This document shows, one piece after another, positions 41,201 through 47,800 of a stretch of 64,000 nucleotides of DNA. Within the stretch, counting starts at the first letter, position 1; the number at the start of each line of letters is the position of its first letter. The DNA lies in assembly GCA_907165135.1 (NCBI GenBank), contig OU015566.1:10974001-11038000 (forward strand), in the 5' to 3' direction. The notes beneath the pieces are model-generated. The model ran no database searches. It saw nothing but the letters and a program-made list of their open reading frames with translations, and was not told the DNA's origin. Made by a program: the position numbers and the translations under genes. This DNA comes from Oikopleura dioica. Its lineage: Eukaryota > Animalia > Chordata.

Positions 41201-43498
41201 GCCTGGAGCAGAATCGCATAGAAGGGATAGAACGGTCGTTACGGAGGTGGATAAAATTGACGGAGCCATACAAGTGAGTAATACAAGTGACGCTCTAAAA
41301 ATTTTAAACTGAGTTTTTGAATGACCTTGCACGAATAAAAGTTCCGTAATTAGTATTTTTGAACATGAGTTTTCGGTTTTCTTATCTTATCAGATGATGT
41401 CTAAAAGACGCAGCTATGGTTCTTACTTGGTTTTTTAGGAAATGGCGCTTGCTTTTACTCATTTCCAAACGATTACGATCTGGAATCATATTTTCACGCC
41501 AAAGGAATGAGTTAGAGAATGATTTGGCTTTTGATTTTTCCGCTAGAATCATTTTCGTAACTCATGAAAAAGGAATTTTTTTACGAGCGTCTTGAGCGTG
41601 CCTTTCCTGCAATTATTGTAAAACTGGTCAACGCCGAACCCGAGGTATTCCACCACTTTGCATAAAACATAGACAAGCAGCAAAATACACCTACAACTAG
41701 CGATTGTTTTCAGCTCTGTAATGAAACTTCTCTAGAAATCAACGATCGAGAAGCCGTCGATGATGCTGAATAAACTTTATGGCTTCGTTGATGTTATGCA
41801 ATCAGTAGGGACCCTTATCGACGCCGACGTTAGGCACATAATCTCTGAAGGATCGGTTCAATCGCCTATTTACTAAGCACTTTTCTTATCGAATGGGTTT
41901 TTATTCGCATGACGCTAAAGCTTGAATAAACTTTGGTGAGCCCAATCTTTCAATCTTCTTGAACCTGCCTGAAAAGTGCTCCTGCAACAGACACAAACAA
42001 CAAGTGCTTCTGGCGAAAAAACGATGACCGCTTACTACGCATCCTGGTATCGGGAAGTTCTCCTCCGAAAAGCCACGGATTTCCAGCGGGAAGTCATCTT
42101 TTCGCCGAATAAAGACAGTTTTGCAAATTTTAATCAACAAGAAAGACACATGATGGGAATGATGAATCCGGAAGATTACACCAATCCTCAGGTATTATTT
42201 ATCTACATTTTTTAAAAATAGATATATTGCTTTATTTTTAGTATTTATTAGGAGTTCTGTTCAAAATTAAACGACACCGCATATGCGATATGGAGAGTCT
42301 ATGGCATCATTTTGTCATTATAAATTTTAGAGGATCAGTTTCTCACTTTGACCTGAAACCAGTCAACGTTTTTGTCAAAGCTCTCATTTTAAAAATAATC
42401 TCCTCTTCATTTTATTGTCATTTCCTAAAATCCCGGGAATACCCGTCAAATATTATCTCAGGAACTGCGCGCCCTCGCGGAGCTACTTGGCCCATTTGGA
42501 ATTCGTTTTATCTTGGACAGCTTATCAATCCAGATTTCCCAACAAATCAAGGAGCTCCTCCAGCTCGTCAAGCAAAATCGCAACCATCTTCGCATGCTCA
42601 GAACTTCATTCGAAAATCATGAAAAAATGAATGAAACGACTGCTCAATTGACGGAAAAAGAAACGTTCTTGAGTCGATTGCAAGTGATCGGAGTCATCAT
42701 TGAATTCCAACACTCGCTGCAGCGGGCGCTAGAATATGTGATGGAAAATCGAGTTCCGTATCTGTTGGCGCCGATCAAGGAAATGCACTCGAGCATCAGT
42801 AGTTTTGAAGATTTGGACAAGCAGTTCAGACTTGTCGAGCTTTGCAGAGCGGCCGGTCTTATCGCCGATTTCGATGTGACTCTTTGTAGACATCTTTTTC
42901 AAAATGTTCCGGCTGATCCAAGGAAAGGGTTGACAATTTTACATCAAGCTTTTCGAATTGCTTATTAGCTTCGATTTTTTCAATCCTTTGAAAGCAAAAA
43001 ATATGAAGAATACGAAAACTGCTGCCTACTCCTCGTATTCGCCGCAGTGACGATTCCATTTTTGGCGAAAGACCAGGACTCGGAATATAATCCCGATTTG
43101 GGGGGTCACAAAAATAACACTCACTGTATTGCCAAGGCGATCAATGTAGTTGCGACGGCGCTCTTTATGGTCAACGTCAAGGCCCAAGATGCCAACAGGG
43201 AGGAAGAAATCGGCGCTAGAATGGTCGAGTTTCTTGCGCTAGCGAGTTCAAGTTTGTTGAGAATCGGAAACGAAACTGGTGTTCTTTCCAGAAATCGCGA
43301 TGCTGTCTATTTGCTTATCGGAGATATTGTTAAAAAGTCAAAGGTGAGAAAATGACTTCTTTTTATTAACCTGAATGATTCCTGAAGATCTAAAATTACC
43401 AATTTTTCTAGCACCTGACAATGGACAAACTCGAGACCTGCTTCCCTTACGTTCTTCTCCGCTACAGCTACGCAAGTGTCCAAGATCGCTCTCGCTAA
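38233..43498 (+). CDS. NCKAP1: Nck-associated protein 1 (Nap1/Hem, WAVE complex)
   Basis: HKIAERLTILNKRAPGMLTRLFNLKK; RDQPGLLGPRA; DLRGFRLDWFRLQSYTS; C-terminus LTMDKLETCFPYVLLRYSY. Confidence 0.96.
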
Positions 43499-43990
43499 AA
43501 GACTAAAAAGCACGGCCAAAAGCCCTCACGTCACAAACCCTCCTGAAAAAAAACCTATCACTGCTCTTAAAAAACATTGATTCACCCTTCCTTCCTTCCC
43601 TCGGTTTTCCCCTATCACTGCACTATCCACTCAGAAACAAATGTTCCTCCAAATCATTCAGAATCTTCTAACTCTTCTCTGTCACTTCTTATCAGAGAGA
43701 ATAACACCCGCTGTACATGTCCCTGTCTTATCGAAAATTTCCCTGATAGTATCTTTTCCCCAAAAAGTTGTACTACTAAAAATAAGACAGACTTTTCGCT
43801 TCGCTTTCAATTCCTTCTGTATTCTTTCTTCAAGCTTTTTCGTTTCAAATTTTTCAAATGCTTTATTCAAAAAAATTCTAATTTCAAAATTTTAAATTTC
43901 CGCAATTTCAAAAGTTATAATTAATTTCAGCTAAAGATTCAGATTCTAACTTGCGCAATCATTTCATCTTTTCAGAGATAATCTGAATTT

Positions 43991-44782
43991 ATGTCGAGCG
44001 CAAATTCGCCATTCGTGAAAGGTGAAAAGCGGATTTTCCGTGGTGCGGCAGGCGTGAACTTGGAATCGCGAAATTATGATAATCTTGGAGCGCCAGATGA
44101 TTGGCAAGACGACTTGATATCGATTCTCTTCAGGAAGGCGATATCTTTGGACGAGAATGTTTGTGACTCACTTGGTAAGCAATAAAATGAGAATCTTGAT
44201 CAACCATTTTTCAGATGATTTGGAAGACGCATTTCAAGCGTTTGAAAGTACGCCTGGTCGTTTTGTTAACCCCAACCAGCAAGTTCGGAAAGTGTTCGCT
44301 AGCGATAAGGTCTACGGCGAGTGGGAAGTCGTTGGGGCAGCCACAGAAAGTCCGAGTCAAGGAGAGATCCTCAATTTATCGCAAATTAAAGAAGAACTCC
44401 GAGTCATTGAGGACGATCAAGGACAGGATTCGAAACATATCTGAATGTAGCTTTTTCGGCTTATGAAAGAATGGTTGAATAATCCAGGGAAGAAAAAGAG
44501 GAAGATTTTGATGTAGAAGAAGACGAGGAAGAAATTGATGAGAACTTCAACGAAAAATCACCAGCAAAGACACGAAAAGTAATTATCATCTTGAGAGCCG
44601 TTTGTTTACCCTATTTTCAGACAGTAGAAAAGACGCACAGTCAGAGAGCCACATGGAAAGAAGAACGTGAAATTAGGACAGATTGGCCAGACGATTTGGC
44701 AGAAATGTGCCAATCCTGGTACCTGGCGGGGCAAAAGCTGGGAGTTTTTCTTCAAAAACAAGCCATGAAAAGTTCAAAATAG
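43991..44782 (+). CDS. SMN: Highly divergent survival motor neuron protein, 4 exons
   Basis: DDWQDDLISILFRKAIS aligns without gaps to the SMN Gemin2-binding helix DIWDDTALIKAYDKAVA. The C-terminal LAEMCQSWYLAGQKLGVF aligns to the YG box LGSMLISWYMSGYHTGYY. The domain order is correct. Confidence 0.72.
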
Positions 44783-44889
44783 TGACATAAGTTTGAATTC
44801 TAGCAGAACTGCCGACCCAAGCTGTACATAAGATTTTCCATTTATCAAATCACAAAAGCGAAAGATTTCTAGCATCGTTTTACTTTCAG

Positions 44890-47800
44890 ATGTCAAGACA
44901 GCCGATCTCACTGGATGAGGTATGGAGAGGAACAGACAAAGAGCCCGGTTTGGAGCACTCAATCGAGCGAATTTTCGCCCATGATTTCGAGAAGCAGGCG
45001 TACATGCATGCTTACACAAAGATCTTCAATTATTGCACTTCTTCAAGAAGTTCAACGAACCCAATCGGCAGGAGCGCGACGAACAGAATTGGCTCAAGGA
45101 TTAACAGAAGACCTAACGGAGAAAATGGAGTTAGCTCTTCAAATGATATGTTTATAGGATCGAGATTTAAAACTTCTCTTAAAATTTACTTAACACTAAT
45201 TTTATTTTTCTATAAAGTAGCGTCAGCAATCTAATTATCTGATGGAGGGTCATTAAACAGTTTTTATGAAAAGCCGTAGCGGCTTTTTTGTAAATGGAGC
45301 GGCGAAACGGCTTCTCCAAAATTTCTTTCTAACTCTTTTACTTCCAGCTTTCGATTATTCTACATTTGAGCCATGTTTCTGGCGCATTCCTCTACAAATA
45401 CTTATCATGTTCTGGATGATGTAAATTTTTGAATTTCAAAGTGCCGTACTTTTCCGCGGTACTCAAAAATCATCCAAAAGGAGAAAATTTTAGAGCGCAG
45501 TAACCTAAAATATGTGCACTTGAAATTCCGACGTTTCGCACCCGAACTTTTCAGCATATCTTTTCAATTTTTCAATCTTGATCGAAGGCGGTGAACTCTA
45601 CAAGAAACTGCGCAGCGTCATCGACGACAAGGTCACGTGTGTCTACAACGAGGCGAAAAAGGTCAGCGGAGTGGACATTCTAACTGACTACCACAAGAAC
45701 TGGAAAGACTACAAGTTCTCGATTCGCGTTTTAAACGGCGTCGCTCAATATTTAAACAAGCATTGGGTCCAACGCGAAAAGGAAGAACATGGCGGCCCAG
45801 ACAGCGCGGTTCACGATGTCAGAAGCATGGGCATCGTCGCCTGGAGGGAAAATATGTACAGAAAGAATCTGGAGCCGATGATGGAGCAAATTATGAGGGT
45901 GATTGAGAAGGAAAGAGAAAATGAAGGAAGGAGTTTCTTAAGGGTTTCACCTAGGATCGACAAGTCCCACCCGACACCCGATCGAAAACCGACGTTTTTG
46001 TCGGGTTTTTGTTGGATTCTGCCGACCCTACAAAAACCCGACGCTGAATTTTTGGCGACCCTATAAAATCGGGTTTTTATAGGGTCAATTATCGGATTTT
46101 TGTAGGGTATTTTCGTCGGGTTTCTCTTCGGGTTTACTCATCAGTTTGATTAAAGATTGTACCCGAAATACTGTTAGCCAAAAATTATGTCTATTTTCGC
46201 CATTTTGGACTCATTTTACTTGTCAATTCAGAATTAACTTCAGTGTTGTGAGAACCCGACAAGAACCCGACAAAGACCCGATAAAAACCCGAAAAATACC
46301 CTGCAAAAACCCGAAAAATAGCCTACGAAAATCCGATAAAAACCCGACAAAAACCCGACGAAAACCCGACAAAAACCCGATCGGAAAAATCAGACTTGAA
46401 GAAAATCCGACGAAAACCCGATCCGGATTTCGGGGGCATTTGTCGATCCTAGGGTTTCACAGCCTATATTATATAGGCTATATAGTAGGGTTATATACCT
46501 AGGGCTTGTACCATTTTTAAAATTTTCCGATCATCAAAAAGCATTATGAAAATTCCGAAAAAGCGGACACTTCCCATCATCTACTGCTCAAAACGATTCT
46601 GCAAGAGTCCGTCTGCGAACTCGGCCTGGAGAAGAAAAACAACGAAAAAGACGCTACCGGTCGTCCGGAGCGCGACCTCGGCGTCTACCGCGAAACCTTT
46701 GAAACCCGATTCTTGAAAGAGACGACCCAGTATTACCAAGCTGAGTCGTCAAGTTTTATTGAGAGGTTAGAAACATATTCATTTTTGAAAATTTGTTTTG
46801 AGTACTTAAAATTGAAAAAGGGGTTTCTTATTTGCATTCTTCAGCCACTCGCTGGTCGATTATCTCGTCAAGATTGAGAAGAGGTTTGAAGAGGAGGATC
46901 GACGCGTCAGAAGGTAAGAGGCTGGTCCCTTAAGTTTTGCCATGGGTAAGGGTCCCTTACTAAAGGGATCTAAGTGGAGATTTTCGGAGAAAACCGCAGT
47001 ACATGAACACCTCGGTGGATTCTAATTTGACTATGATAATGGCAGTGGCATTTGGTGTCACCTTAATGCAAATTTAAAAACGATAATGATTGACCCGAGT
47101 TATGTAGTGATGAATCAACGTTTCTTCCTTCTTATTCCAAGAAATCTTATTCGAAGTCATAGTTTGTTATTGAGTAAATACTCTTTCCATTATTTTGTCC
47201 AGCTAAGTACTCGTCTTTTAACCGCACTTGTCCGCAGCCGCGCTCTTATCATCCCCAATTTTCCAGCTTACCTCTTCATCATCATCATCCCTATTTTCAG
47301 CTATCTGGACAGCTCGACAGGTCCGAAAGTGGAGCAGACGCTCGTAAAAGTGCTCATAGAAGCACACATCGCAAGAATTCACGATGAATTCAAACCCATG
47401 GTCGAGCACGAGAAGATCGACGACTTGAAGAGGGTTTTCGCCCTTGTCAACAGAGCAGACAAATTTAGGAGCGAAAGCGATAAGAGCAATAATGTCAGCC
47501 CTTTTCTTGGTAAATAATAAGTATATTTCATCTGACGAATTATATGTTATTGGTGGGAATCGAACCCGTGCCGGTCTTATCCGAATTTTCAGACCCGATG
47601 CGAGATGCTTTCCGCCAACACGTAGTTTCCGAAGGAATCGCTGCTGTTGACGCAATCAAAGAATCCGCCCTGGTCGACCCGAAAAACTACATCGACGCCG
47701 TCCTCACTGTGTATAAAAAATACTCAAAAGTCGTTCTCGACGCCTTTGCGTCCAGGGTTGAACATGTTCACGTTTTGCTAATTTGGAAAATTAGGTCTTA

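Follow-up and report, generated by a model that had tools for sequence, protein, structure and literature searches.

A probable larvacean SMN orthologue with a reduced, fission-yeast-like layout in Oikopleura dioica

A gene at positions 43991-44782 (forward strand) of a 64,000-nucleotide stretch of Oikopleura dioica DNA (GenBank assembly GCA_907165135.1, contig OU015566.1, positions 10,974,001 to 11,038,000; hereafter the window) most likely represents SMN in larvaceans, as an orthologue whose reduced layout is like that of fission yeast. Its four exons specify a protein of ~212 aa, with the ATG at 43991 and, after splicing, a TAG stop at 44780-82, as read from the list of open reading frames (ORFs) and their translations. 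In the proposed layout, an N-terminal Gemin2-binding helix would be followed by a long, flexible, Tudor-less linker and by a self-associating glycine-zipper helix at the extreme C-terminus. Because the window-wide and off-diagonal controls described below temper each single score, the SMN identity rests on a combination. Two motifs that occupy the expected ends, in the expected order, of a protein about as large as invertebrate SMNs, together with conservation on functionally important columns and consistent language-model neighbours, most likely mark the gene as an SMN.

Conserved modules of the larvacean protein

Three conserved modules of the gene are under strong purifying selection. Between the window and its relative L001, the ratio of nonsynonymous to synonymous substitution (dN/dS) was 0.064 at a synonymous divergence (dS) of 0.31, and exon 1 held 10 nucleotide differences with 1 amino-acid change (dN/dS 0.03). 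Among the window, L001, L002, L012 and L013, where synonymous divergence is near saturation, dN/dS was 0.02-0.08 in the N-terminal block, 0.03-0.10 in the middle block and 0.01-0.04 in the C-terminal helix (dS ~0.8-2).

Relatives were sought by a full HMMER scan with exon 1 of 1.8 billion representative proteins standing for ~15 billion predicted ones. Seven matches were returned, with relatives at E values of 1e-27 to 5e-5; six were short exon-1 ORFs on genomic or metagenomic contigs (88% to 40% identity), and the seventh was a short alignment to an unrelated 1,249-aa protein. The contigs of the exon-1 matches, a scan of Joint Genome Institute (JGI) metagenomes and a word search with the C-terminal alignment yielded whole or near-whole orthologues in L002, L005 and L012-L016, and orthologues are present in at least five more distant larvacean lineages. 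The preliminary description had called the gene cryptic, which fits: the ~15-billion library, which may lack annotated O. dioica gene sets, holds no spliced full-length protein with this N-terminus, and the gene is apparently missing from public protein sets. A literature search found no paper joining Oikopleura with SMN.

Four patterns are kept in all larvaceans sampled: G-E-x-R-[VI]-F-R-x-A-x-G in the N-terminal motif, P-x-x-W-x-D-x-[IL]-x-x-x-[LM]-F in the N-terminal helix, [SH]-D-x-V-Y-G-x-W in the linker, and L-x-[DE]-[LM]-C-Q-[SA]-W-[YF]-x-A-G-[QK]-[KN]-L-G-[VIY]-[YFL] near the stop. Translation and profile alignment confirmed the earlier claim that SMN-type patterns stand at both ends in register with SMN. 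For these comparisons, human peptides were confirmed against the PDB chains 4GLI, 5XJL and 2LEH, the residues named in PMC8287954 and PMC3462613 served to verify the human numbering, and canonical mini-profiles were built from PDB-chain peptides (human and Schizosaccharomyces pombe for the YG box; human, fly and S. pombe for the Gemin2-binding helix).

The C-terminal helix carries S-W-Y at 44714-22 and glycine codons at 44729-31 and 44741-43. Eight of its columns are invariant in eight larvaceans, namely C264, Q265, W267, A270, G271, L274 and G275 in human numbering and a Lys at 280. AlphaFold2 predicted a single helix over residues 22-51 of a 53-aa piece, with a block-mean predicted local distance difference test score (pLDDT) of 93-96 over residues 31-50. 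A profile of the eight larvacean sequences aligned with the human YG box in the predicted register at 12.6 bits, a score reached by 0 of 20,000 and 1 of 10,000 composition-matched shuffles (1/30,000 overall). When the profile was split, the O. dioica lineages alone gave 10.6 bits (2/20,000 shuffles) and the other larvaceans alone 12.8 bits (0/20,000). Against the S. pombe YG box, the larvacean C-terminal profiles gave P values of 0.0007-0.01. In the reverse test with the human and S. pombe mini-profile, all larvacean C-terminal pieces had P <=0.006, with 0/5,000 for the window piece. The invariant Cys-Gln (window 44708-44713, human 264-265) stands directly before S/A-W-Y/F, where human SMN has Leu-Ile, and its Cys sits on the Tyr-motif face of the helix.

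The putative Gemin2-binding helix reads D-D-W-Q-D-D-L-I-S-I-L-F-R-K-A-I, with the W codon at 44102-04, and W38, D40 and F47 are invariant in seven aligned larvacean sequences. In human SMN, L39, A42, Y43, A46 and V47 are buried in Gemin2, D36 faces Gemin2 and W34 is invariant (PMC3462613). At human W34, D36, L39, A42, Y43, A46 and V47 the larvacean protein has W, D, I, L, F, A and I, all identical or conservative. The larvacean N-terminal profile aligned in register with Gemin2-binding peptides at P values of 0.014 for human, 0.0014 for fly and 0.0023 for S. pombe, and the orthologue P0006, which has W-D-D, scored 9.4 bits against the canonical mini-profile (1/5,000 shuffles). An Atlas language-model search with the N-terminal piece gave no usable match. 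On these alignments, the N-terminal helix appears to be weaker evidence for SMN identity than the C-terminal helix.

Upstream of this helix lies a basic N-terminal motif in which E12, R14, F16, R17, A19 and G21 are invariant among larvaceans. It may resemble the V-L-F-R-R-G-T-G of vertebrate SMN, a likeness that we treat as a lead only. An F-R-x-A-x-G sub-profile gave no alignment to human SMN residues 10-32, and the larvacean protein has ~9 more residues than human SMN between the F-R-x-x-x-G motif and the helix.

The region between the two helices is predicted to be disordered: AlphaFold2 gave the middle region a pLDDT of 57, with no strands and no fold. A middle-region profile scored -1.5 bits against the human SMN Tudor domain (P 0.45), and Pfam found no Tudor domain in window or orthologue pieces. 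Within the linker, the D, V, Y, G and W of the motif [SH]-D-x-V-Y-G-x-W are invariant in 11 sequences (including L005, L009, L010, L011, L015 and L016), embedded in an otherwise fast-evolving stretch. This motif is a candidate binding motif.

Profile searches, calibration and the case for SMN identity

Pfam has three SMN families (PF20636 SMN_G2-BD, PF06003 SMN_Tudor and PF20635 SMN_YG-box), and a match to an SMN profile had been set beforehand as a test of the preliminary description. None was found, so that by this test the SMN reading would be refuted. These searches, like the fold and library searches, used separate exon pieces. The calibration, however, shows the test to have been too strict. 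The human YG box scored only 16.5 and 13.2 bits against S. pombe (7BB3 and 4RG5), next to 13.5 bits against an unrelated TorT chain, and the human Gemin2-binding helix reached 18.2 bits with the fly sequence and 15.1 bits with that of yeast. Proven SMN orthologues are barely visible to HMMER in these short helices, and because proven YG boxes score only 13-16 bits pairwise, requiring a Pfam match asks too much of them. With 12.6 bits for the larvacean profile against human and 13-16 bits for yeast, the larvacean C-terminal helix resembles solved YG boxes about as much as these resemble each other.

A number of results nevertheless weigh against an SMN identity. Among the Pfam searches, four window pieces matched no family at E up to 10 (filters drop most matches above E ~0.1), ten orthologue pieces gave a single, unrelated match (Kdo, E 0.088), and a 166-aa ORF of L016 gave nothing at E up to 0.01. 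PDB searches with the larvacean N- and C-terminal profiles A2, A3 and A7 returned no SMN chain at E up to 10, and in BLASTP comparisons with the human peptides the N-terminus reached 13.5 bits, while the C-terminus had no match. The Tudor domain present in animal SMNs is not detectable here. In the N-terminal helix, the invariant human D35 is Q and D44 is R; the window's own N-terminal piece does not rise above noise with the human, fly and S. pombe mini-profile (P ~0.1) and falls outside the top six of 1,625 stop-to-stop window segments. The C-terminal piece ranked only second among the same 1,625 segments with the human and S. pombe mini-profile (E 0.27), and an off-diagonal control, the C-terminal profile against the human Tudor domain, gave P 0.005; since this control reached that value, P values near 0.005 are not compelling alone. 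The strict definition of a YG box comprises GxxxGxxxG, an interleaved YxxxYxxxY, a small-residue s-motif and the preceding hydrophobic L260/M263 (PMC8287954), and here two of its three glycines and one of its three tyrosines are present. Two of the three s-motif residues are also present, and L260 and M263 are kept. Given its second place among the window segments, the C-terminal match is best described as suggestive and, even at window scale, not unique.

The segment that outscored the C-terminal piece against the YG mini-profile, at 8.0 bits only slightly above it, lies at 46194-46322 on the reverse strand in a repeat-rich stretch past the exons of a neighbouring cullin gene, and looks like a low-complexity chance match. 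Searches of PDB with phmmer, using the N- and C-terminal pieces, found no SMN, and a Foldseek search of PDB with the C-terminal helix model found no match, as expected for a single helix. Matches of profile A2 to 'Pizza' designed propellers were rejected as an artefact of summed 7-bit repeat matches.

It is unlikely, though worth weighing seriously, that the gene encodes a larvacean-specific small protein other than SMN, for instance a dimeric GxxxG-helix adaptor, with helices that resemble those of SMN by chance or convergence. Such a protein would leave every curated and PDB profile without an SMN match, its N-terminal piece at noise and its C-terminal piece behind a repeat-derived segment, and GxxxG helices are common. 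Chance or convergence accounts poorly for two separate motifs that each sit at the appropriate end, and in the appropriate order, of a protein similar in size to SMN. Conservation among larvaceans also falls on columns that are important in SMN, namely W34, D36, Y43 and A46 at one end and L260, W267, G271 and G275 at the other. More distant orthologues look more canonical rather than less: L005 has G-Y-Y at 275-277, P0010 and P0011 have I-Y and so keep Y277, and P0006 has the W-D-D noted above. Finally, in the Atlas search the C-terminal pieces of the window and of L005, which are 31% identical, had the same SMN_YG-box clusters as neighbours (175-187 of 256 features), at a score of 0.87 that, being below 0.9, counts as a lead only. 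With respect to the claim that the gene is an SMN orthologue, what stands is a constrained, expressed gene with the SMN layout from end to end; its membership of the SMN family is probable.

The gene neighbourhood bears on whether an SMN-type gene here could be a copy. In the window, L002, L005, L006, L012, L013/L014 and L015-L018 the immediate downstream neighbour is a cullin gene, as it is in every contig that reaches far enough, including those of four of the distant lineages. The adjacency (window 42513-46066) holds even in lineages that are ~30-45% identical over aligned pieces. Upstream of the gene, Nckap1 is found in the window and in L002. We consider it quite improbable that the gene is a divergent SMN paralogue, or a fragment-like derivative, with another or a lesser role than a canonical SMN encoded at some other locus. 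Redundancy would make it easier for a copy to do without a Tudor domain and to carry degenerate Y and G motifs, and the search for SMN-type genes covered the 64-kb window only. Against a paralogue speak the very strong purifying selection on both end helices, the adjacency to cullin across deep larvacean lineages, which fits an old, single, essential gene, and the single SMN copy that eukaryotic genomes besides human carry (PMC8287954).

Substitutions at disease sites and comparison with known SMN proteins

The preliminary description had mapped seven changed residues of the C-terminal helix to human SMN, six of them at sites of spinal muscular atrophy (SMA) missense changes. The mapping is correct: anchored on S266-W267-Y268, it gives S262E, Y272Q, H273K, T274L, Y276V, Y277F and G279Q. 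The label 'SMA-type substitutions', however, overstates the case, as proven SMNs vary at positions 262, 273, 277 and 279 or accept changes there. Higher-order oligomers still form when S262, H273 or G279 is substituted, lower organisms mostly have Tyr at 273, and position 277 needs a large hydrophobic residue (PMC8287954), which F or L supplies. Fission yeast has Ala at 277 and Leu at 276 in the alignment of 7BB3 and 4RG5. The determinants of oligomerisation that are kept are L260, M263, W267, Y268, G271, the central G275 and small residues at 266 and 270 (S266, with S270 as A). Of these, G275 is a position at which the human variant G275S is monomeric (PMC8287954).

The departures that are unusual are common to all sampled larvaceans: Y272 is Q or K, T274 is a bulky L, and the third glycine is lost. 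O. dioica keeps just one intact Tyr-Gly contact out of three, the first. The yeast change T138I, at the equivalent of human 274, impairs oligomerisation, and human T274I does so only moderately (PMC8287954). A further proposal had been that SMN possibly forms a low-order oligomer in this lineage. This cannot be inferred from the helix, in which F277 speaks for higher-order assembly and L274 against it. Both the low-order oligomer and its link to an unusual spliceosome are speculation; the only fact here that bears on the latter is the GA-AG intron of the gene described below.

Among known SMN proteins, that of S. pombe is closest in layout to what we propose. S. pombe Smn1 (4RG5, 7BB3), at 152 residues, lacks a Tudor domain and joins its Gemin2-binding helix through a long flexible linker to a YG helix at the C-terminus (PMC10470402), a layout that the larvacean protein would share. 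The two also share an aliphatic residue at 276 (L in yeast, V in larvaceans) and F at the human Y43 position. Unlike the larvacean protein, S. pombe SMN keeps three glycines and the central Tyr (S-W-Y-Y-A-G-Y-Y-T-G-L-A-E-G), where the larvacean helix lacks the third glycine and carries Q/K at 272 and L at 274. The larvacean protein in turn adds the invariant C-Q before S-W-Y and the [SH]-D-x-V-Y-G-x-W linker motif.

With human SMN (294 aa; 4GLI, 5XJL, 2LEH) the larvacean protein shares the order of modules, and W34, D36, K45, A46, L260, M263, S266, W267, Y268, G271 and G275 are identical. L39I, Y43F, V47I, M269L, S270A and Y277F are conservative; D35Q and D44R join the six C-terminal positions 262, 272, 273, 274, 276 and 279 as changed. 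In place of the Tudor domain and the proline-rich region of human SMN there is an acidic/basic linker. Drosophila SMN (226 aa; 4V98) is of similar size, and its YG box likewise differs from that of vertebrates at 273 and around 278-281 (PMC8287954), but unlike the larvacean protein it keeps the Tudor domain, the W-D-D triplet and the central Tyr (dmY203). The animal SMNs that have been studied (human, fly and worm) combine a Tudor domain with a complete YG zipper, and higher-order SMN oligomers are reported to be essential for metazoan viability (PMC8287954).

If the gene is an SMN orthologue, its N-terminal helix would bury I43, L46, F47, A50 and I51 (human L39, A42, Y43, A46 and V47) in Gemin2, and Gemin2 would hold the Sm pentamer. 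Pairing of the C-terminal helix would rely on the retained hydrophobic extension L260, M263 and W267, on Y268/G271 as the first Tyr-Gly pair and on the central glycine G275. The canonical zipper would have lost its other two Tyr-Gly pairs (Q272, V276, Q279), and the small-residue face would retain S266 and A270 but carry L at 274, with a large hydrophobic residue (F) still at 277. Whether larvaceans assemble small nuclear ribonucleoproteins (snRNPs) in this way, with a minimal SMN that lacks the Tudor domain and two of the three Tyr-Gly contacts, keeps Y268/G271 and G275 and adds the invariant Cys-Gln and the new linker motif, seems to us evenly balanced.

Should the SMN orthology hold, the gene would be a natural experiment on which residues of the YG box and of the SMA sites an animal can spare, and capture of Sm proteins would here be independent of Tudor recognition of dimethyl-arginine. 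A chordate SMN without a Tudor domain and with Q, L and Q at 272, 274 and 279 would indicate how far the zipper can be rebuilt, and would give structural studies naturally compensated variants at SMA sites. It could also be asked whether larvacean snRNP assembly was simplified alongside unusual splicing. If the link to SMN is wrong, the gene still encodes a conserved larvacean protein.

Gene structure, introns and expression

The features of the gene are listed in Table 1. Intron 1 contains an in-frame stop, with the frame picking up again past its AG, and is 65% identical to L001, as compared to 95% for exon 1.

Table 1. Features of the SMN-like gene in the window (coordinates are window positions)
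Feature	Position	Strand	Remarks and basis
Spliced-leader acceptor tttcag (43970-75) and 15-nt 5' untranslated region, inferred	43970..43990	+	By equivalence with the sister lineage
Exon 1	43991..44174	+	Codons 1-61 and 1 nt; basic N-terminus, G-E-K-R-I-F-R-G-A-A-G motif, Gemin2-binding-type helix
G-E-K-R-I-F-R-G-A-A-G motif	44021..44053	+	Larvacean alignment
Putative Gemin2-binding helix P-D-D-W-Q-D-D-L-I-S-I-L-F-R-K-A-I-S-L-D	44093..44152	+	Amphipathic; alignment
Intron 1	44175..44214	+	GT..AG, 40 nt, phase 1
Exon 2	44215..44421	+	Linker region carrying a short conserved motif
Motif S-D-K-V-Y-G-E-W	44301..44324	+	[SH]-D-x-V-Y-G-x-W in all sampled larvaceans
Intron 2 (inferred)	44422..44492	+	Non-canonical GA..AG, 71 nt, phase 1
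Exon 3	44493..44578	+	Linker: acidic, then basic low-complexity
Intron 3	44579..44620	+	GT..AG, 42 nt, in frame, stop-free
Exon 4, including stop codon	44621..44782	+	Translation
YG-box-like helix D-D-L-A-E-M-C-Q-S-W-Y-L-A-G-Q-K-L-G-V-F-L-Q-K-Q-A-M	44690..44767	+	Alignment, model

Exon 2 has no in-frame GT donor and cannot read to its own in-frame stop and then continue. It must end upstream of 44430-32, because L001 has TAG where the window has TCG. The junction of AAG with G[A/G] at window 44421/44422 is common to the window, L001, L002, L012 and L013, and a GA..AG intron at 44422-44492 is the model most consistent with these alignments. Alternative junctions, GA at 44432 or GG at 44426 with AG at 44487, would change few residues of the acidic linker. 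This intron may explain the absence of a spliced model from protein libraries, and it may have helped to hide an essential gene from public protein sets. The junction dinucleotide is GA in the window and GG in L001, so that a non-canonical GA-AG/GG-AG intron is kept across O. dioica lineages.

The predicted junctions and the lack of a GT donor in intron 2 would also be expected if the gene model were an artefact, either of unrelated ORF fragments joined together or of a pseudogene. This reading is largely refuted and has very little left in its favour: exon order and frames agree among five O. dioica-type lineages, whose dN/dS is well below 1, the junction at intron 2 is conserved, and a transcript is seen in a sister lineage.

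That transcript came from the RNA runs X4-X6, which bear the same species label and are ~88% identical to the window in exons, the read differences falling mostly on third codon positions. The reads match the lineage of the JGI metagenome contigs L013/L014 rather than the window, and have in common with these contigs the N-terminus M-S-T-G-P-F and the helix S-V-L-F-R-T-A-I-T-Q. They cover exons 1 and 2, and in them ...CTAACAG is joined to AGAATTGCGAA-ATG. As the 40-nt O. dioica spliced leader ends in these seven bases, CTAACAG (PMC6883708), the sister-lineage orthologue is a trans-spliced mRNA. The SMN-like gene is thus transcribed, with the spliced leader attached, in the sister lineage L013/L014. 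In the window, cag/aga just 5' of the ATG is the equivalent of the sister-lineage trans-splice acceptor. The match in RNA lineage and the spliced-leader end together place the window within the O. dioica species complex, and the near-saturated synonymous divergence between lineages fits cryptic species within O. dioica.

Exon 3 is poorly conserved between lineages (68% identity to L001), as is intron 3 in the lineage alignment A5. Reading through intron 3 gives 99 aa translated without a stop, and retention of this intron would add 14 residues just ahead of the C-terminal helix region with the frame intact. Intron positions vary among larvacean lineages, as seen when L016 (2242-3132) and L015 (641-3210) are compared with the window. 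In L016 an intron separates the F-R motif from the helix, and the stretch from the helix to the V-Y-G-x-W motif is intron-free; in L015 ~1.8 kb separates the middle exon from the last exon.

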